From Lytechinus pictus (taxonomy: Eukaryota), in contig NC_087248.1 in assembly GCF_037042905.1 (NCBI RefSeq), forward strand, positions 29,450,001 to 29,514,000: a DNA stretch of 64,000 bases, read 5' to 3'. Below are positions 8,960 to 63,930 of this stretch, piece after piece. Under the pieces are notes generated by a model. That model ran no database searches, was not told where the DNA came from, and saw nothing but the letters and a program-made list of their open reading frames with translations. The number at the start of each line of letters is the position of its first letter. Position 1 is the first letter of the stretch. A program made the position numbers and the translations under genes.

Positions 8960-9530
8960 TTGGAAAGAGACAATGTGAGCTTGATTGTGATGAAGAGTTC
9001 ATGTCTGACGAAACTCATTAGGCTCGCCGAAGGTTGATTGAAAAATAGGTGTGATAATGATCGGATGGATGGGGGATTGGGGGGGGGGGTGTGGGGAAAA
9101 GGGGCATCTTCTCTTCTTCACAGTGTAATGAAGCTGGGTTTTTTTTTTTTAGGATCTGGGATACAAAGCAATGAATCTGATTTTAGTGAAGAGTTCATAT
9201 CTTAACAAAACACCTCAGGCTACTCACTGATGTTTGATTGAAATTGGTGATGTGAGAATGATTTTACGAAGGGGGGGGGGGGTTCTACTTTAACAGATGC
9301 AGATCCAGATGCTTGTTCAGAATGTCATCTAGGATAGAAAGTAATGAATCTGATTTTAGTGGAGAGTTCATGTCGTAACAAAACTCATTAGTTAGCTCGT
9401 TGAGGGTTGATTGAAACATAGGTGTGAGTATGATTTTACAGAATGGGGGGGGGGGAGTCTTCTTTCCAGATGCTTGTTCAGATTGTCATCTAGGATACAA
9501 AGTAATGAATCTGATTTAAGTGGAGAGTTC
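8960..9530. repeat. Degenerate tandem repeat, ~160-195 bp period, about 4 copies
   Basis: Anchor G(A/G)AGAGTTCAT recurs at 8992, 9188, 9361 and 9522 with shared 'aatgaatctgattttagtg' and 'ggttgattgaaa...ggtg' blocks. Confidence 0.75.
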
Positions 9531-10437
9531 ATTTCTTTATTTCATTGGGTTCTTAGTGTTACAACTTGCTACTTACATCATAATGTGTGAAGGCAATGTG
9601 TAATAAGGTTAGCAGTGAATACAACTCGGTGATATATTTCTTGAAAAGATGGCTTAATGTTCCAGTGTGCTTAGCTGTTATTAAATGTTCAGATGTAGCA
9701 GTAATTCTAATCAAAGCTATTCATATAACACCAGTGAACTTTGGTTTTCATTCCTAAATTTGCAACAATTAATATAATACCTAGCACACAATAAAATACA
9801 TTCTCACAGAAATTAATGACTCAGAATAAACTAAGAGAAAATAATGGCAGATTAAAAATTAGGTTTTAGAGGTTAAGGATTAGTTTGTTTTTCCTTTTTT
9901 TTTTGTGGCGGGGGGGGGGGGGGAATAACTGCCCTCATTCTTTTTTCATAATGAACGCTGGTTTGATACCATCTTTTGAAAATGATAATAATGACCTTGA
10001 CTATGAGGAAAGATTCAAGTCCAACAAGGTGTATTACTATTTATGGAGCTGGGTTTGTATCAAAATGACTTGTACTTTTTTTTGCAAACCCTATATGGTA
10101 TTAGCAGAATTCAATAATGGAAAAATGTAGATGAAATGCAAGGAATTAGCTTGACTCTGATGAAGAATTCAATTCTTTTTATTACAGTTATATTCAATGG
10201 ATTTTCGGGTTGTAATTGATTTAAGATATTTCCTTTTTTACCGGTAGTCTTTTCAGATAAAATCTATAATTTGTAATAGCCGAGTATGTACACATTCTTT
10301 TTAGTTGTGCACAAATGTCTCCATCCTTTTGAAAATCTAGTCATCATTCAATGTATTGATTATTTTCCTTCTCTATTATGTCTTCATAACAGCATAATAT
10401 AAATAATGATAACATTGGAATTTTATTGTCCACGTAT

Positions 10438-36979: not shown

Positions 36980-37710
36980 ATGGAGAGTCATAGAGTCAGT
37001 TTAAGAGATAGGGTAATTATTATTTGTCAGTAAAAATATAGAGAAAGAGAGAAGATATATTTTCGCCATTAGCAGGACACATTGTGGCCTTCCAAAGCAG
37101 TAATTAAGAAAATCTTAAGCGGCAAAATGGCTACTTTGTCTTTTCAAAGTGGGAGCCAAAGAGTAAGTTTAAGAGATTTATAGGTAATTATTATTTTTCT
37201 GTGGAAAGAAATAGAGAGCGAGAGGGAATTAGATATTGTCACTATTACCAGGACTCTTTGTGACCTTCCGAGGCAGTAATTAAGAAAATCCTAAGCGGCA
37301 AAATAAGAAAATCCTAAGCTGCTAAATGGCTGCTTTTTCTTCTCAAGGTGGGAGCCATAGAGTAAGTTTAAGAGTATAGGTAATTATTATTTTTCAATGA
37401 AAAAAATAGAGGGAGAGAGAGGATTAGATATGTTCACCATTACCAGGACACATTTACGGCCTTCCAGAGCAGTAATTAAGAAAATCTTAAGCGGCAAAAT
37501 GGCTGCTTTTTCTTCTCAAGGTGGGAGCCATAGAGTAAGTTTAAGAGTTTAGGTAATTATTATTTTTCAATGAAAAAAATAGAGGGAGAGAGAGGATTAG
37601 ATATGTTCACCATTACCAGGACACATTTACGGCCTTTCAGAGCAGTAATTAAGAAAATCTTAAGCGGCAAAATGGCTGCTTTGTCCCTCTCAAGTTGGAA
37701 GAGCCTGTGA
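36980..37710. repeat. Tandem repeat, ~170-bp unit x4
   Basis: AGAGT(A/C)AGTTTAAGAG anchor at 36992, 37160, 37359 and 37532; units 3 and 4 nearly identical; unit 2 has an internal ~22-bp duplication. Confidence 0.85.
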
Positions 37711-38464: not shown

Positions 38465-39068
38465 TTAAAGGACAATTCCACCCCATCAAAAAGTTGATTT
38501 GAATAAAAAGATAAATATCCAACTAGCATAACACTGAAAACTTCATCAAAATCAGATGTAAAATAAGAAAGTTATGACATTTCAAAGTTTCGCTTATTTT
38601 CACAAAACAATCCTGGTTGGTATGGAAATGAGGAGACTGATGACGTCATCCACTCTCTTTTTCTTTTGTATTATATTATCTGAAATATGAAATATTCTAA
38701 TTTTCTCCTCATTGTCAAGTGAAACAACGATTAATTCCTCCCTGAACATGTGGAATTAACATTGTTTAATACTATATGGTTCAGTCAAGTTGGTCCTTGT
38801 TGTCAAATCTGTAAAAAAAATGAAATATTGTATAATTCAAACAATAAAAAAAAAAGAAATAGTGAGTGATGGACATCATCGACTGACTCATTTGTATGTC
38901 ACTGAGTTGTGCATATCACTGTTTTGTGAAAGAATAAGCGAAACTTTAAAATGCCATAACTTTCTTATTTTACATCCAATTTTTGATGAATTTTTCAGCA
39001 TTATGCTAGTTTGATTATTCTCTATTTATTTAAATAAAGACTTTTTTGGGGTGGACCTGACCTTTCAA
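38465..39068 (-). mobile_element. Kolobok-like MITE family A, copy 3 (inverted)
   Basis: Starts TTAA-AGGACAATTCCACCCC; contains the reverse complement of the family A core (tatggttcagtcaagttggtcctt). Confidence 0.85.
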
Positions 39069-39169
39069 GATCCCATGATGAGTTGACCTTGTGGAGTATC
39101 AAGAACAAAGGAAAGGATCATGATGGAGAGAGAGAGTGAAGACTTGAAAAAAAAAAAAAAATAGTGGCG

Positions 39170-39752
39170 TTTAATCTTAATGATATGCATTTTAGTGATC
39201 ACTCTTGTGAATTTTTTGGCCCATTGCCATTGTACACAATATTGTTTGGGCCAGTGGCGGCTATTTTAGATATCAAAATACAGCAATGTTCCCATATATG
39301 ACATAATAAATGATATATCTCGTTAGTAATGATGATTTGCATATATTACTTCGTTCCTACATCGCGATTTTTTGCGGTTTAGTGCTAATTTTTGTGAAAA
39401 TTAGTTTTCCCTATTCATATTGTACATAATGAGTATACAGGGGCCTATGGTGGCCATTTTGAATATCAGGAAAATAAATATTTTGTCAAAAATTATTTTT
39501 TCAGAGAGTATTTCACTCCTGCCACACGATTTCATGCATTTCATAGCCAATGTGCGGATAATTTTATGATTTTCATGGGTAATTGCATATTTTGGCGGCC
39601 ATATTGGATTTTGCCAATTTGCGGAAAATGCTCAAGGTTACACGTGTGGCATCATCCAGATTCGTAATCAGCACCCTCGAATTGACAAGAAACCCTAAAA
39701 AAATATTGTATATATAAAAAAAACAAGGTTATGTCTCTTCTATCCTAGACTA
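39170..39752. mobile_element. Truncated DNA-transposon end (hAT-like)
   Basis: Repeated GGCGGCCAT(A/T)TT motifs and a terminus ...TATCCTAGACTA; partner end not seen. Confidence 0.45.
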
Positions 39753-39932
39753 ATTAAGCATGTTTTCCAGTACTCATCAACAGGAAGGAATACTAATTAA
39801 TAGAAAGCATAATCTGCTTTATAGAAACCATATTATTAAGAAAATAACCATGGAAAAGAGGATTTTTTTGTTTTTTCATGAGGCTGAGATGATCAGTAAG
39901 CTTAGTTTGAATTTCTAGGAAAATGTGCTTCA

Positions 39933-41402
39933 TTTTTGTCTCGCCCACCAGAGGTGAAGGCGAGACTTAGGGATCCAAATGTCGTCCGTCCGTCGTCCGT
40001 CCGTCACAAACCTGTAATGACACATAACTCCACAACCGTAAGTCGATTTTCAACCAAACTTGGATGGTTGATGAACTTGGGGGACCTGCAAGTTATCCTG
40101 CAGTCTGAGGTCACATGGTAAGGTCAAAGGTCATTTTCAGGTCAACGTTAAAGTTTATATGCAAGACTCTCTTATGACACCTTACTCCACAACCGTAAGT
40201 CGCTTTTCAACCTAACTTTGATGGTAGATGGACGTGGGGGACCTGCATGTTATGCTGCAGTCTGAGGTCATATGGTAAGGTCAAAAGTCATTTTCAGGTC
40301 AACGTTAAAGTTTACATGCAAGACTCTCTTATGACACCTAACTCCGCAACCGTATGTAGCTTTTCAACCAAACTTGGATGGTAGATGGACTTGGGGGACT
40401 TGCATGTTATGCTGCAGTTGGAGGTCGCATGATAAGGTCAAAGGTCGTTTTCAGGTCAACGTTAAAGTTAACATGCAAGACTCTCTTATGACAGCTAACT
40501 CCGCAACCGTAAGTCGCATTTCCACCAAACTTGGATGGTAGATGGACTTGGGGGACCTGCATGTTATACTGCAGTCGGAGGTCACATGGTAAGGTCAAAG
40601 GTCGTTTTCAGGTCAACGTGAAAGTTTACATGCAAGACTCTCTTATGACACCTAACTCCGCAACCGTAAGTCACTTTTCAACCAAACTTGGATGGTAGAT
40701 GGACGTGGGGGACCTGCATGTTATGCTGCAGTCTGAGGTCACATGATAAGGTCAAAGGTCATTTTCAGGTCAACGTTAAAGTTTACATGCAAGACTCTCT
40801 TATGACACCTAACTCCGCAACCGTAAGTCACTTTTCAACCAAACTTGGATATTAGATAGACTTGGGGGACGTGCATGTTATGCTGCAGTCAGAGGTCACA
40901 CGGTAAGGTCAAAGGTCATTTCAGGTCAACATTAAAGTTTACATGCAAGACTCTCTTATGACACCCAACTCCGCAACCGTAGGTCACTTTTCAACCAAAC
41001 TTGGATGGTAGATGAACTTGGGGGACCTGCATGTTATGCTGCAGTTGGAGGTCACATGGTTAGGTCAAAGGTCATTTTCAGGTCAACGTTAAAGTTTACA
41101 TGCAAGACTCTCTTATGACACCTAACGCCGCAACCATAAGTTACTTTTCAACAAAACTTGGATGGTAGATGTACTTAGGCGACCTGCATGTTATGCTGCA
41201 GTCGGAGGTCACATGGTAAGGTCAAAGGTCTTTTCAGGTCAACATTAAAGTTTACGTGCAAGGCTCTTATGACAAGTGTTATTCCATCCCAGTCATTTCA
41301 CAATGAAGTTTCGATATAATTCTTTTGCGTGCCCTCGCAAATCACGATATTTCTGGTTATTTTAATAAGTGGGCGAGACACAAAATTGCTTTTGCCTTGT
41401 TT
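39933..41402 (+). mobile_element. Helentron-associated (HINE/DINE-1/Tsp/pearl-type) element with 8 x 157-bp central tandem repeats
   Basis: 5' T-run + subTIR TGTCTCGCCCAC with nearby partial inverted copy GGCGAGAC; GTCC microsatellite at 39981-40005; unit starts at 40017, 40174, 40331, 40488, 40645, 40802, 40958 and 41115; 3' subTIR GTGGGCGAGACA then short hairpin CAAAA-TTGC-TTTTG and T-run. Confidence 0.85.
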
Positions 41403-42891
41403 ACTGTAAAAAGTTCTCCACTTTGGAAAGTGTTGAATCTATTGAACATTGTGTTATATTTGTATTTTATTTGCTTCTTTCCATGAACAAAGAAATGATA
41501 TCCTCCTCATGATTTTGGGAAAAGAATTACATCAATTGTATAATGCCCCTTCATTCTCCCAATGCATCCATCATATAGGCTTACAGTTCAATGACTCGTA
41601 AGGATCATACAAACGAATTGAAAAAAAAAACATTCTGTTGCAATATATCCTAATGACTCACATTATTGAGCTATTTCTAGGAATGTCATCCTTCTATTGT
41701 GACGTATGATCTTATTATTCATTTAAAGCCCCCTTTTTAACTTTTAATCTCACAAAATATGTGAAGGACACGATCAGACGCTTCCTTTTTCCACCTGTAT
41801 GTAAACGAGGATCTCTTTGATAAAGCAATACCCTGAAGGCACACTCACACCTGCCCCAGTCTGAAATATATCTCATATTTTGCAAGTGTGAAAGAAACAT
41901 TTTGTACCGTAATATCTCTGAAAGAAAAACAACTAACCACAAAGAAGTAGGTAGGCCTACATTTCAAATTTCCAAAAAAAATTGCAGGATTTTGTCAAGG
42001 TTGCGGTATGTTTGCAGTGTGAAACTGAAAACTGATTGATTAAACAACTTCTTTATTTATAATTTTGATTGGGTACTTGAATTGAATTTATTTTCATACT
42101 TCACAAGCTAGCAAAGTAATAACATAATATGAGAAATGCATTTGATAAAATACAAAAGATAATAGCAGTAAATAAAGTGAAATATGAAGGAACCTGCCTA
42201 AAAGCAGGTTGATTTTCACAAAACTGATTCACAAGGTGCAAATATAGGAATATACAAGTTAGATAACAAGAACAACTTTATATCCAGTCTCTTCATAAAA
42301 GTGTTTATCTTGTTGCTTGCTCATAACTATGAGAATTTATTTGCTTTTAGTAGGTGTGAAAACAAAGTCATTTAATATCAGGTCTAGCCTGTTGAAGTAA
42401 ATTGACAAGTTAGTTTACCTGTCATTTTTCCTATTTGGGGCGGGTGTAAACATGTTCCAAATAATAGTTCTTTCTGTTTTCGCAAGGACAAATCAATCTA
42501 GTATTCATACTTGTCTTTTAAGTGACGATTATGTAACATGTGTACAATGCCAGCACATCAAAAAAAAGACAAGAAACTGAACCTACTTGATCATAGGACT
42601 AGTAGGTTAGTTTTTCATTACAGACTGTTTCTCAATTTGTTTTTAAATATTTGTAATACAAGATCTTTGTTTTGTAAAAAGCAAATAAATTTAAACTATT
42701 TAATTTTAACTATTAAAAAAATCAATTTGTTTGTTTTTCATCAAAACTCTTTTCTTTAAATGACTCTTTAGATACATTCAGGTTATTTTGATATACGTAT
42801 AACCTTGGTTTATGTTTGATACTATCATATATTCAATTATGCATTATTACGAAGATAGTGAAATTACTGTAAGTAAAAAACGTTTTCTTAT

Positions 42892-50195: not shown

Positions 50196-50611
50196 GGTAA
50201 ATTGCCAATTCGTCCACTGCCAACTGTCCACTTACCACATGGTCTACCTTTATTTAGTCTAATGCCATTCCGTCCATCAACATTTCGTCTAACAGCAATT
50301 GGTCCATTAGCCATTCGGTCCAATCATCACTTTGTCTAATCACCAGTACGTCTATAACCATTTCGTCTAATAACCAGTTGGTCTAATACCAATTTTCTTT
50401 TCCTTCATTTTGCACAATTAACACTTTAGTTTAATTAGACCAAATAGTATATGGACTAAATGGCTATTAGACCAACTGGTTATTAGACAGAATGGCATTA
50501 GACTAAATGAAAGTAGACCATATGGTGAGTGGACGAACTGATGGTAGACCAAATGAAACTAGACGAGTTGGCAATTGGACGAATTGGGATTAGACGAATT
50601 GGAAATGAACT
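50196..50611 (+). mobile_element. GG-terminated MITE with 8-bp TSD (Merlin-like by inference), copy 1
   Basis: TSD CAGATGAG at 50188-50195 and 50612-50619; repetitive 'gtctaa/ccaat' arms; copies at 59215 and 61578. Confidence 0.85.
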
Positions 50612-55953: not shown

Positions 55954-56436
55954 ATGTTGTATGCAAGCGTTGCCCCGACCAGTTGCGATAGAATGCACCA
56001 CATGTCTCAGACGCAGATCGAGAGCAGCAACCAGCCACTCAACCTTAGCCACCCCTCCAAGCTCAAAGCCAAGCTGTCGGCCCGTCACCACCACGCCATG
56101 ACCGCCGCGGCCCGTTCCCGCTCCCCATCCAGCTCGCCCCCATCTTCCATCTCCTCCACGACCCCATCATCCATCACCAAACCCAAAGCCAGGATGGGAT
56201 CGCATCACCACCACCATCACCATCATCACCACCATCACCACGACGATAAGGAACGCTCCTGCAATTGTCCACAGCTAGACTCGAAGAACACTATCCTCTA
56301 CCGACTCCTGACAGAAGGGTACAGCTATTGGACTCCTGTTTGTTGTATTGGTGGAAAGTGCCACGATGGACACATCCTAGGACAGAGCAAGTTAAAAATT
56401 CTCCTGGAGGAGAGCAAGAGACAAGCAGTGCAATAA
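55954..56436 (+). CDS. NR0B (DAX1/SHP) N-terminus-like ORF: PLNLS, poly-His and two LXXLL boxes; self-contained 160 aa (147 aa from ATG 55993)
   Basis: GC3-rich codons unlike the flanks; SCNCPQLDSKNTILYRLLT resembles SHP CPCQG..PAILYALL and DAX1 GSILYSLL; SKLKILLEE resembles SHP LKKILLEE (from memory); in-frame TGA at 55942 upstream, TAA at 56434, strong donor AG|GTAAGA at 56501/56502. Confidence 0.75.
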   Translation: MLYASVAPTSCDRMHHMSQTQIESSNQPLNLSHPSKLKAKLSARHHHAMTAAARSRSPSSSPPSSISSTTPSSITKPKARMGSHHHHHHHHHHHHHDDKERSCNCPQLDSKNTILYRLLTEGYSYWTPVCCIGGKCHDGHILGQSKLKILLEESKRQAVQ

Positions 56437-59214: not shown

Positions 59215-59602
59215 GGGTAAACTGCCAACTCATCCGCTCACCACATGGTCTACTTTCATTTAGTCTAATGCCATTCAGTCTATCAACATTTCGTCTAACA
59301 ACTGTTTGGTCTTTTAACCATTTGGTCCAATCATCACTTCGTCTAATCACCATTTCGTCCATAACCAGTTGGTCTAATATCCATTTGATTTTCATTCATT
59401 TTGCACAATTTAACGCTCGGTCCAATTAGACCAAATATAATATGGACTAAGTGGCTATTGGACCAACTGGTTATCAGACGGAACGGCATTAGACTAAATG
59501 AAAGTAGACCATGTGGTGAGTGGACGAACTGATGATAGACCAAATGATAGTAGACGAGTTGGCAATTGGACGAATTGGCATTAGACGAATTGGAAATAAA
59601 CC
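59215..59602 (+). mobile_element. GG-terminated MITE, copy 2
   Basis: TSD CATAGCCC at 59207-59214 and 59603-59610; same body as 50196. Confidence 0.85.
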
Positions 59603-61577: not shown

Positions 61578-61958
61578 GGTAAATTGCCAATTTGTCTACT
61601 GCCAACTCATCCGCTCACCACATGGTCTACTTTCATTTAGTCGAAAGCCATTCCGTCCATCACCATTTCGTCTAACAACCATTTGGTCCAATCATCACTT
61701 TGTCTAATCACCATTTCGTCTATGACCATTTGGTCTCATAACCAGTTTGTCTATCTCCATTTTAAAATTCGTTCATTTTGCACAATTAGTCCAAATTGAC
61801 CAAATGGTAAATGGTCTAAATAGCTATTGGACCAACTGGTTATTAGACGGGAAGGCATTAGACTAAATGAAAGTAGACTATGTGATGAGTGGACGAACTG
61901 ATGGTAGACCAAATGATATAGTAGACGAGCTGGCAATTGGACGAATTGGAAATCGACC
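61578..61958 (+). mobile_element. GG-terminated MITE, copy 3
   Basis: GGTAAATTGCCAAT...AATTGGAAATCGACC; same body as 50196; TSD not preserved. Confidence 0.8.
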
Positions 61959-63685
61959 ATTTTAATTGGGGTAAGTTATTTGGTGGAGGTGGATTATCAA
62001 TATAGCGACAAAGTAATTGTGCTTTTCCATTCTGATCATAAGGGTCTGATTTAAGTTAGACTAAACAAAAAAAATGTTCATGTCACATGTGTTGTTACAG
62101 CTTCTATTTTACTCAAACATAATTTTAGAAGGCCTTAAGCCAAGGCTAACCCTTCTGCTTTCTGGCTCCATGGATGTTGATGTTCATAGTACAGTCCCAT
62201 TGGTCTTGTACTTCAAACCCTTTATACAAAGATGACACCTGTTCCATATTTAGATGATTCTTTTTTATGTGTTACCAGGCAACGATCATGTTAGACAATT
62301 CTAGCCATACACCAATTTTCTTGGGAGAAAACATTCTTTGTACTTGTCAACCTTATGTGTTGTGTTTCTTTCAAACTTCTCAAATTTAAGTGTCTAGAGA
62401 GAGCCTGGTACAAAGACTATTTTATTTAGCCTTGGAGACTGATTTGTGTTCAGTAACACTCCAGTTCATGTTAGCCTGCATGTTTGCATTGTTTACCAGT
62501 CAAAATTAATTAACGTAGAAAGCGCCTCAAGGTTCCTTTCTGCATCAGCTTAATTCTCCGACCTTACATCAGCTTTTATTTTTCCTCCAGGATAGGTTAA
62601 ATCTCCTGGCAGAATATTGATCCATGCTCATGAGTGGAGTCCTTGGCTAGACAAAAGCCTGGCTAAGAGACTAATGTCCTCCTTTCTTTTGTTCTGGAGT
62701 TGAAATCATATCCTCCAATGCATATTCCAAGACATTGTCTTCTGTAAATTTGTTAGAACAAGGACTTACTCCAAACTAATTGATAGATGAGAATAGTCAG
62801 TTTGCGTCAATTACATCTTAGTGCATGTTGGGGTGGACGTCATGTTTAACCTTGTTGTTTAAGATGGTTATTTTTCAGCATGAATTGCAGTGGTTTCTCA
62901 TATTCTCTTGCTAATTGGCCAGGATATTGTCCTTGGCTTGTCATGTCAAAGATGAAACATGGCCTCATTAGACTGAATCTTGCTGTGAGTTGTGATCAAT
63001 TTTCTTTATTTAAAACAAAGTGTACGCTTAATTATTTAATGAAAATTTTAATGAATACAGTGAAGGTCGGCGGAGATGGTGTATATATAGGATTTCTCTA
63101 AAAAGATACTGTTAATGAAAAAGATAACAATATTTGTATACAATTTTTTTCTTCTGTTTGTTACAAGGCATTTCTCACACTTGAATGGGTGATCCTCAGA
63201 TACCCATACTTTTTCAAGTAAAAAGTAAACCAAAATTGCTGATGTGTACGGTTTGGGCCAAACATTTGATGAAGTCCCACGTATGCATCTTTACGTGCAG
63301 TGTGTGCGACTTACATCAAAATGGGAATCGATTTCTGATCATTTCCATCATTCTGAAATCTTACTGGATCATTTCTTTATTTAGAAGTTTGAGACTTTTT
63401 TTCTTCATTCTCATCAATCCTATGTCCAAACTCGGGGCGATTTGATGTCCTGTGAAAAGTGCGAAATTGTCCATTTTCCTTCTTACATTGTATACCTCCA
63501 CTGTGTCGTTAACTTTATGAAGACTTCTGATTTTTTTATTAGTTCCATGATTTTCTCATTTTTGATTTTACCAAGCCTATGTCGATCATGCCATGTTATC
63601 ATGGCTGCTACTGTTGTTTGCCCCCCTGTATTAAAAACGAAGTAATATTTGAATAATTTTCTCCTTTCATTCTCTTCCGCTGCAG

Positions 63686-63930
63686 ATGTTCGAGGGTTGT
63701 CGAGCGCCGGTCTGGTGGAAACCCTTCAGGGCCACACCCAGCTCAAGCTCTCGGAGTACGTCACCGCACTGCACCCCCGGGACCCCCTCCGCTTCGCCCA
63801 CCTCCTCCTCAGCCTGCCCCCGTTGCGTAACGTGCGCCCTCGTGTGGTCACCCAGCTATTCTTCCGTGACCTGATCGGAGAGGCAGTGGAGATGGAGGAG
63901 ATTCTTCAACAGATGCTCCTTGGCGAGTGA
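63686..63930 (+). CDS. NR0B: Terminal coding exon of an NR0B (DAX1/SHP-like) nuclear receptor: C-terminal LBD helices and AF-2
   Basis: Polypyrimidine tract + CAG acceptor at 63683-63685, phase 1 (G|AT). DVRGL...LQGHTQLKLSEY...RFAHLLLSLPPLR...LFFRDLIGEAVEMEEILQQML aligns with DAX1 DVPGL...LQWGTQQILSEH...[20 protein letters not shown] at the same intron position (from memory). TGA at 63928. NR2E/NR2F is the less likely alternative. Confidence 0.85.

Follow-up and report, generated by a model that had tools for sequence, protein, structure and literature searches.

The locus considered here lies in a stretch of 64,000 nucleotides from Lytechinus pictus (contig NC_087248.1, hereafter the window, with coordinates counted from its first letter), where AGGTCA half-sites are arranged in a tandem array upstream of a receptor-like gene. 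It raises the question of whether the array is a nuclear-receptor docking platform that acts on the gene, or whether it is the cargo of a mobile element that came to lie there. On the reading considered highly probable, a non-autonomous Helentron of a high-copy family has inserted at the locus, the insertion is segregating, and the resemblance of its satellite cargo to a composite DR1/DR5 element is fortuitous.

The array itself is delimited by Tandem Repeats Finder (TRF) at 40017–41274, with a period of 157, 8.0 copies, 91% matches and no indels. When it is cut at the ATGACA anchor, the units start at 40017, 40174, 40331, 40488, 40645, 40802, 40958 and 41115 and measure, in order, 157, 157, 157, 157, 157, 156, 157 and 154 nt. 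Each unit carries AGGTCA-n7-AGGTCA-n1-AGGTCA-n5-AGGTCA, all on one strand, which gives the order DR7-DR1-DR5. The exact-word search found 28 perfect AGGTCA on the + strand of the array, 27 of them in register and one at 40981 in unit 7, where an A>G change within a GTAAGTCA stretch produced it. Five of the 32 in-register sites are broken, and all five fall outside the RGKTCA consensus: AGGTCG occurs three times (sites 1 and 3 of unit 3, site 3 of unit 4), AAGTCA replaces site 3 of unit 2, and a 1-nt deletion disrupts site 3 of unit 8. Direct RGKTCA pairs with spacings of 1–5 nt are present, with a perfect DR1 in four units, a perfect DR5 in three and a DR4 in one; judged by its letters, this arrangement would fit textbook response elements, which are direct repeats of RGKTCA (PMC1785376). 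The preliminary description had reported eight 157-bp units of four half-sites, 27 perfect half-sites, perfect DR1 in units 1, 5, 6 and 7, perfect DR5 in units 1, 5 and 7, and a DR4 in unit 6 owing to a 1-nt deletion; TRF, the word search and the unit-by-unit comparison reproduce each of these, its 27 being the in-register count, which becomes 28 with the new site at 40981. The monomer is also nucleosome-sized, as had been remarked, and in this it agrees with published HINE repeats (PMC7492417).

The array is bounded on both sides by modules of a larger element, and the features recognised are as follows.

39933–41401, + strand: whole non-autonomous Helentron (HINE), ~1469 bp, placed by family contig ends, each end ±1 nt
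39933–39937, + strand: 5′ terminal T-run TTTTT, from the sequence
39938–39948, + strand: 5′ subterminal inverted repeat (subTIR) GTCTCGCCCAC, 11 nt, from the inverted repeat arms
39953–39966, + strand: short internal inverted repeat GGTGAAGGCGAGAC, the partner of the 5′ subTIR in a hairpin, from the DNA fold
39981–40005, + strand: (GTCY)n-type microsatellite, from TRF (period 11, 2.3 copies, 100% match)
40017–41273, + strand: central repeats, 157 bp × 8, four half-sites each, from TRF and word search
40108, 40265, 40422, 40579, 40736, 40893, 41049 and 41206, + strand: starts of the half-site clusters, from word search
41274–41368, + strand: right flanking module with the palindrome TTTGCG...CGCAAA (41324–41341; 6-bp stem), from the fold, with family depth high to 41415
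41369–41379, + strand: 3′ subterminal inverted repeat GTGGGCGAGAC, 11 nt, from the inverted repeat arms
41381–41394, + strand: candidate 3′ stem-loop CAAAA-TTGC-TTTTG, weak and A/T-rich, from the centroid fold of 41365–41420

The extended inverted repeat arms (39933–39948 and 41369–41384) are 16 nt long and 94% complementary, and the 5′ subTIR begins 5 nt from the 5′ end defined by the contigs. In the DNA fold of 39925–40016, the hairpin spanning 39938–39966 is alone the centroid structure, at −11.4 kcal/mol; the candidate 3′ stem-loop, with a 5-bp A/T stem, lies after the subTIR, where HINE descriptions place such a structure, and shuffled sequence folds at least as well. The element ends read TTTTT... 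and ...TTGTT(T), and it is because of these T-runs that each end is uncertain by 1 nt. No target-site duplication was found at 39933 and 41401, where the flanks read ...GCTTCA before the element and TACTG... after it. The longest open reading frame (ORF) overlapping the element encodes 63 aa, a protein search with a 55-aa ORF of the array returned no homologue candidates, an Rfam search of 39000–42500 returned no RNA family, and a second copy of the element was not found within the window. Two other classes of repeat were ruled out: classical satellite DNA, since there are only 8 units and these are bounded by HINE modules, and a cut-and-paste MITE, since the inverted repeats are set back from the ends and the target is not duplicated at 39933 or 41401. 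The view that the array is borne by a transposon of HINE type is thus borne out by structure, by the family ends and by a probable empty site, the last two of which are described below. According to the literature on the family, an element of this kind, which has no coding capacity, would be mobilised in rolling-circle fashion by the Rep/helicase/endonuclease of an autonomous Helentron; the enzyme would recognise the subterminal inverted repeats and the terminal hairpins, and insertion would take place between two T without target duplication. The central 157-bp repeats would then be cargo, the number of which may shift by unequal exchange or slippage.

The family to which this copy belongs was followed in contigs from four public DNA runs, aligned to 39400–41900 at ≥80% likeness. 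Each organism-A run has between 16,000 and 30,000 contigs that fit the element, and the run that carries the label organism B has 1,918. Summed depth reaches 1e5–1e6 over 39904–41415, compared with 0–160 in the unique flanks 39820–39903 and 41416–41900, so that family depth is ~10^3–10^4 times unique depth. Contigs from other copies stop fitting at 39932/39933 in all four runs (45–80 contigs per run) and at 41401/41402 on the 3′ side (50–74 per run, organism A); the letters beyond these points are heterogeneous and A/T-rich, with an agreement of ~0.4, and each run has at least 100 distinct flanks that meet the element exactly at its ends. These shared breaks indicate that the family has fixed ends and occupies at least about 100 insertion sites per run. 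Near-identical monomer words were confined to organisms A and B and to unlabelled runs. A metagenome scan that used a 19-mer free of half-sites returned one bacterial match, due to chance, and no family copy, the viral scans gave nothing or one chance match, and the scan of prokaryote genomes with an 18-mer gave 17 chance matches, all ≤25 nt. Nor did words of the monomer and of the subTIR lead to the family, either in the literature or in the supplements of PMC7492417 and PMC8268682; they matched only an unrelated oyster satellite with TGACCTTTGACCT. The family is regarded as very abundant and lineage-restricted.

The depth along the element also shows which form of the repeat is common. The unit 3 cluster, with two AGGTCG, is the rarest part of the copy, with a depth of 1.9e4, which is still hundreds-fold above unique DNA; the units must therefore have diverged before amplification, whole arrays having been copied. 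Bins with perfect clusters have depths of 7–8.5e5, ~40 times that of unit 3, and so the perfect-AGGTCA form is the common form of the family. Among the variants listed, the majority of family contigs differ from the window copy at 40069, 40074, 40091 and 41127, and at all four positions the family letters revert to the in-array consensus, from which it follows that this consensus, including its four AGGTCA, approximates the family consensus. The AGGTCA cluster is a feature of the family consensus and not of this locus, every copy inheriting the four half-sites from the monomer, and each copy is, as far as its letters go, a latent cluster of sequence-perfect candidate nuclear-receptor sites.

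The insertion at this locus is probably absent from some haplotypes. X1 contig record 8 (561 nt, depth 66.3) aligns to 41400–41900 and has 64 leftover letters that do not fit the element, and single-contig rows of the same depth occur at 39898, 39902 and 39909, with end distances that put the contig end near 39870. From the matching depths and the end distances, this contig probably joins 39932/3 directly to 41400/1 and thus represents an empty site; its flanks are 5–10% diverged, and it could be a paralogue instead of an allele. The filled 3′ junction (41374–41559, 1 mismatch) is held by X8 record 31. The array had been called copy-number-variable, which holds for the copies across the family and for presence or absence of the insertion, a varying unit number at the locus being conjectural. 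The state of the locus is most likely that of a neutral, segregating insertion, its neutrality being a matter of interpretation.

Several observations concern the surroundings of the element. A different repeat of very high copy number occupies 39400–39819, immediately upstream of the HINE. Its depth is 1e5–8e5 in three runs, it has variant and indel hot spots of its own, and loose ends of its family fall at 39431 and 39583/4; a unique stretch of 84–113 nt separates it from the HINE. The unique flanks 39820–39903 and 41416–41900 are 5–14% diverged from X1 and X2 contigs and nearly identical in X8, which is labelled organism B, so that either the population is very polymorphic or the window haplotype is closer to the organism-B sample. 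Subrepeat blocks of 15–16 nt (TAGACCAAATGG-like) occur in both orientations at 50334–50604, 59257–59597 and 61634–61926, and resemble the subterminal arrays of a further transposon family. Two more short arrays, at 37105–37698 and 9154–9532, have units of 173–196 nt in 2.0–2.3 copies, without obvious HINE termini, GTCY microsatellite or AGGTCA clusters.

Whether the half-sites are special can be judged at the level of the monomer, of the array and of the family. The chance test was made on the monomer, as the 28 sites amount to four sites in one monomer that was copied eight times; a hexamer (any hexamer) occurring at least four times in the 157-nt consensus was seen in 360 of 200,000 dinucleotide-preserving shuffles (p = 0.0018), which means that the cluster is a non-random feature of the monomer. 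The DR1 is a perfect twofold tandem of the 7-mer AAGGTCA. Replication slippage yields perfect short tandems such as (AAGGTCA)×2. Within the array, the 24 half-site columns of the monomer differ in 5 of 192 cells (2.6%) and the 133 other columns in 59 of 1064 (5.5%), a lower variability that is not significant (Fisher p = 0.11, circular-shift p = 0.09), the units not being independent; the number of intact in-register sites, 27 against 22.7 expected, is not significant either (p = 0.065, binomial, for one array). An origin by CpG decay, as in Alu DR2, was ruled out, since AGGTTG occurs at none of the 32 sites and the AGGTCA form is dominant in the family. The four copies of the receptor hexamer and the lower variability of the half-sites leave room for a functional reading.

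In the whole 64-kb window, AGGTCA occurs 69 times versus 29.8 expected, 28 of these occurrences being inside the array. Outside the element, it still occurs 41 times, where composition-matched hexamers have a median of 17, which places it in the top 4%; together with the overlapping words TCAAGG, CAAGGT and AAGGTC, it ranks near the top of such hexamers, with 41–62 occurrences per word outside 39933–41402, against the same median of 17. This excess is owed in part to a repeated AGGTCAAGTC[CT]ACC[CT]CAGAA context at 698, 36238 and 39058.

On the downstream side, the array had been placed ~14 kb upstream of the promoter of a nuclear-receptor corepressor (NR0B). An ORF at 55954–56436 starts 14.7 kb downstream of the array; it is small, contains a His-run, has four homologues and carries two LxxLL-type motifs, ILYRLL and LKILL. 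A last exon at 63649–63930 corresponds to the end of a nuclear-receptor ligand-binding domain (LBD), with a Pfam score below the cut-off, and when this LBD fragment was compared with solved LBDs, COUP-TF2 was best (E 1.9e-13) and DAX-1 gave 4.7e-7. No receptor zinc-finger DNA-binding domain (DBD) was found on either strand anywhere in the window. A DBD-less receptor gene downstream is therefore plausible, and the NR0B label given earlier is plausible but tentative, COUP-TF2 outranking DAX-1. With insertion sites that number at least in the hundreds, some copy of the family should by chance alone fall within 15 kb of a receptor-related gene; nothing found points to a specific relation between the array and the receptor-like gene, and only proximity links them.

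These results bear directly on the reading in which the arrays are nuclear-receptor docking platforms, bound on DR1 and DR5 by receptors of the RXR, HNF4, COUP-TF, TR2/4 and RAR types and acting as an enhancer, silencer or sink that affects the gene 14.7 kb downstream. The DR1 (AGGTCA-A-AGGTCA) and DR5 are sequence-perfect, 27 of 32 sites are intact, and the excess of these over expectation leans in the same direction. It has been reported that invertebrate RXR and RAR share the P-box of their vertebrate counterparts and that gastropod RXR and RAR bind DR1, DR2 and DR5 in vitro (PMC5398557), and there are precedents in the Alu DR2, which recruits RAR, and in Alu sites that bind HNF4alpha (PMC1785376, PMC3252374). 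Binding of receptors to the sites is accordingly plausible, and in vitro it would be likely. The regulatory role is nevertheless very unlikely, because the conservation tests are not significant on units that are not independent, every broken site has left RGKTCA altogether, the family is so abundant that nearness to any one gene is uninformative, and an insertion probably missing from some haplotypes is not a fixed regulatory element. The cluster might instead be kept for the benefit of the transposon, a receptor or other factor opening chromatin or driving transcription or replication in the germline or early embryo and so favouring mobilisation. The dominance of the perfect cluster in the family, as seen in the depth by bin, would agree with this, as would the lack of AGGTTG at all 32 sites despite a window CpG observed/expected ratio of 0.53, and the 34 occurrences of AGGTCA and TGACCT in a 43-kb set of C. 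gigas satellite consensus sequences versus 16 and 13 for composition-matched controls. However, the commonest C. gigas HINE arrays are unenriched, with 56 matches in ~400 kb of text, so that AGGTCA is no general requirement of HINEs, and a master copy that amplifies would also make one variant dominant; this possibility is considered unlikely.

Helitron-like elements capture host sequence, and the monomer could thus be a fragment of a receptor-responsive regulatory region of the host that was picked up by a Helentron and multimerised. The cluster does resemble a composite response element, but a single-copy source was not found, the only match within the window being the element itself, and public collections gave only chance matches of 18–25 nt; such a capture is hardly credible. 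A broader proposal is that several Helentron-derived satellite families of this genome have kept a DR1-centred module under selection and spread working receptor sites by the thousands, including into introns of lipid-metabolism genes, the host DR1 binders (of HNF4, RXR, COUP-TF and TR2/4 type) being exploited by the transposon or used to mark or silence it. It is speculative and rather doubtful. The preferred reading remains the Helentron insertion whose cargo happens to resemble a composite element.

With regard to its meaning, the element represents a new family of a known kind, as bivalves and insects are already well known to have HINEs that carry satellite repeats of nucleosome size. Receptor sites borne by transposable elements are a known kind as well (Alu DR2, Alu HNF4), and so are rolling-circle elements that disseminate sites (ISX). 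Its unusual trait is a repeat consensus that reads as a textbook composite receptor element, eight times per copy and in hundreds to thousands of copies per genome. If receptors bind it, the family would parallel Alu-DR2 among the DNA transposons of invertebrates, and it would constitute a large sink or a source of wiring for receptors that bind DR1 and DR5.

Among known systems, the closest comparison is with the Cg_HINE elements of the Pacific oyster (Vojvoda Zeljko et al. 2020, PMC7492417), several families of which contain GTCY, GTCC or GTCK microsatellites at the corresponding position. HINE families often have monomers related by descent (PMC7492417), a kinship that could pass for convergence. 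The window element shares with them the order of modules, namely a 5′ subTIR with a complementary inverted repeat, a GTCY-type microsatellite, central repeats, and a 3′ subTIR with a candidate palindrome, and it also shares satellite-like monomers of 140–180 bp, short arrays, insertion into T-rich or TT sites without target duplication, and dense interspersion (PMC7492417). In contrast, none of the published clusters has a monomer of 157 bp, the supplements of PMC7492417 that were searched contain neither its subTIR words nor those of its monomer, and the Cg_HINE CL1 arrays are not AGGTCA-rich, unlike the array described here. In the literature search, no paper describing receptor-site arrays in HINE satellites was found. 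Across the 52 satellite consensus sequences of C. gigas in PMC8268682, the half-site word outnumbers each of two control hexamers by about two to one, and one of the satellites, CgiSat10 (PMC8268682 Data S1), starts with TGACCTTT and ends with ATGACCTTGACCTT, which in tandem gives three adjacent TGACCT half-sites.

The termini can be compared with DINE-1 and other HINEs, for which 2–5 terminal T and insertion into TT have been reported (Thomas et al. 2014, PMC4067079). Shared features are subTIRs of 11–15 nt a few nucleotides from the 5′ end, an inverted repeat 3–22 nt past the 5′ subTIR, a 3′ stem-loop, which in the window element is a candidate, terminal T strings, a TT target, and the optional microsatellite and central repeats; the 3′ subTIR of the window element ends 22 nt from the terminus, unlike in mite HINE families, where this distance is 38–60 nt (PMC4067079). 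With the Alu DR2 and Alu HNF4alpha sites, the family has in common that a high-copy mobile element spreads direct repeats of receptor half-sites (PMC1785376, PMC3252374). The Alu is a SINE and each element has a single site; CpG deamination that followed insertion gave rise to most of these sites, and binding was observed by ChIP (PMC1785376, PMC3252374). In the present family, by contrast, the candidate sites belong to the master consensus, stand four per unit in tandem and did not arise by CpG decay. The ISX elements of Drosophila miranda, which are Helitron-derived and DINE-1-like, supply binding sites for the MSL complex, with demonstrated function according to the work as cited in PMC4067079; at the level of that citation, the two systems have in common a rolling-circle element that disseminates binding sites for a host complex, those of the present family being candidate sites.
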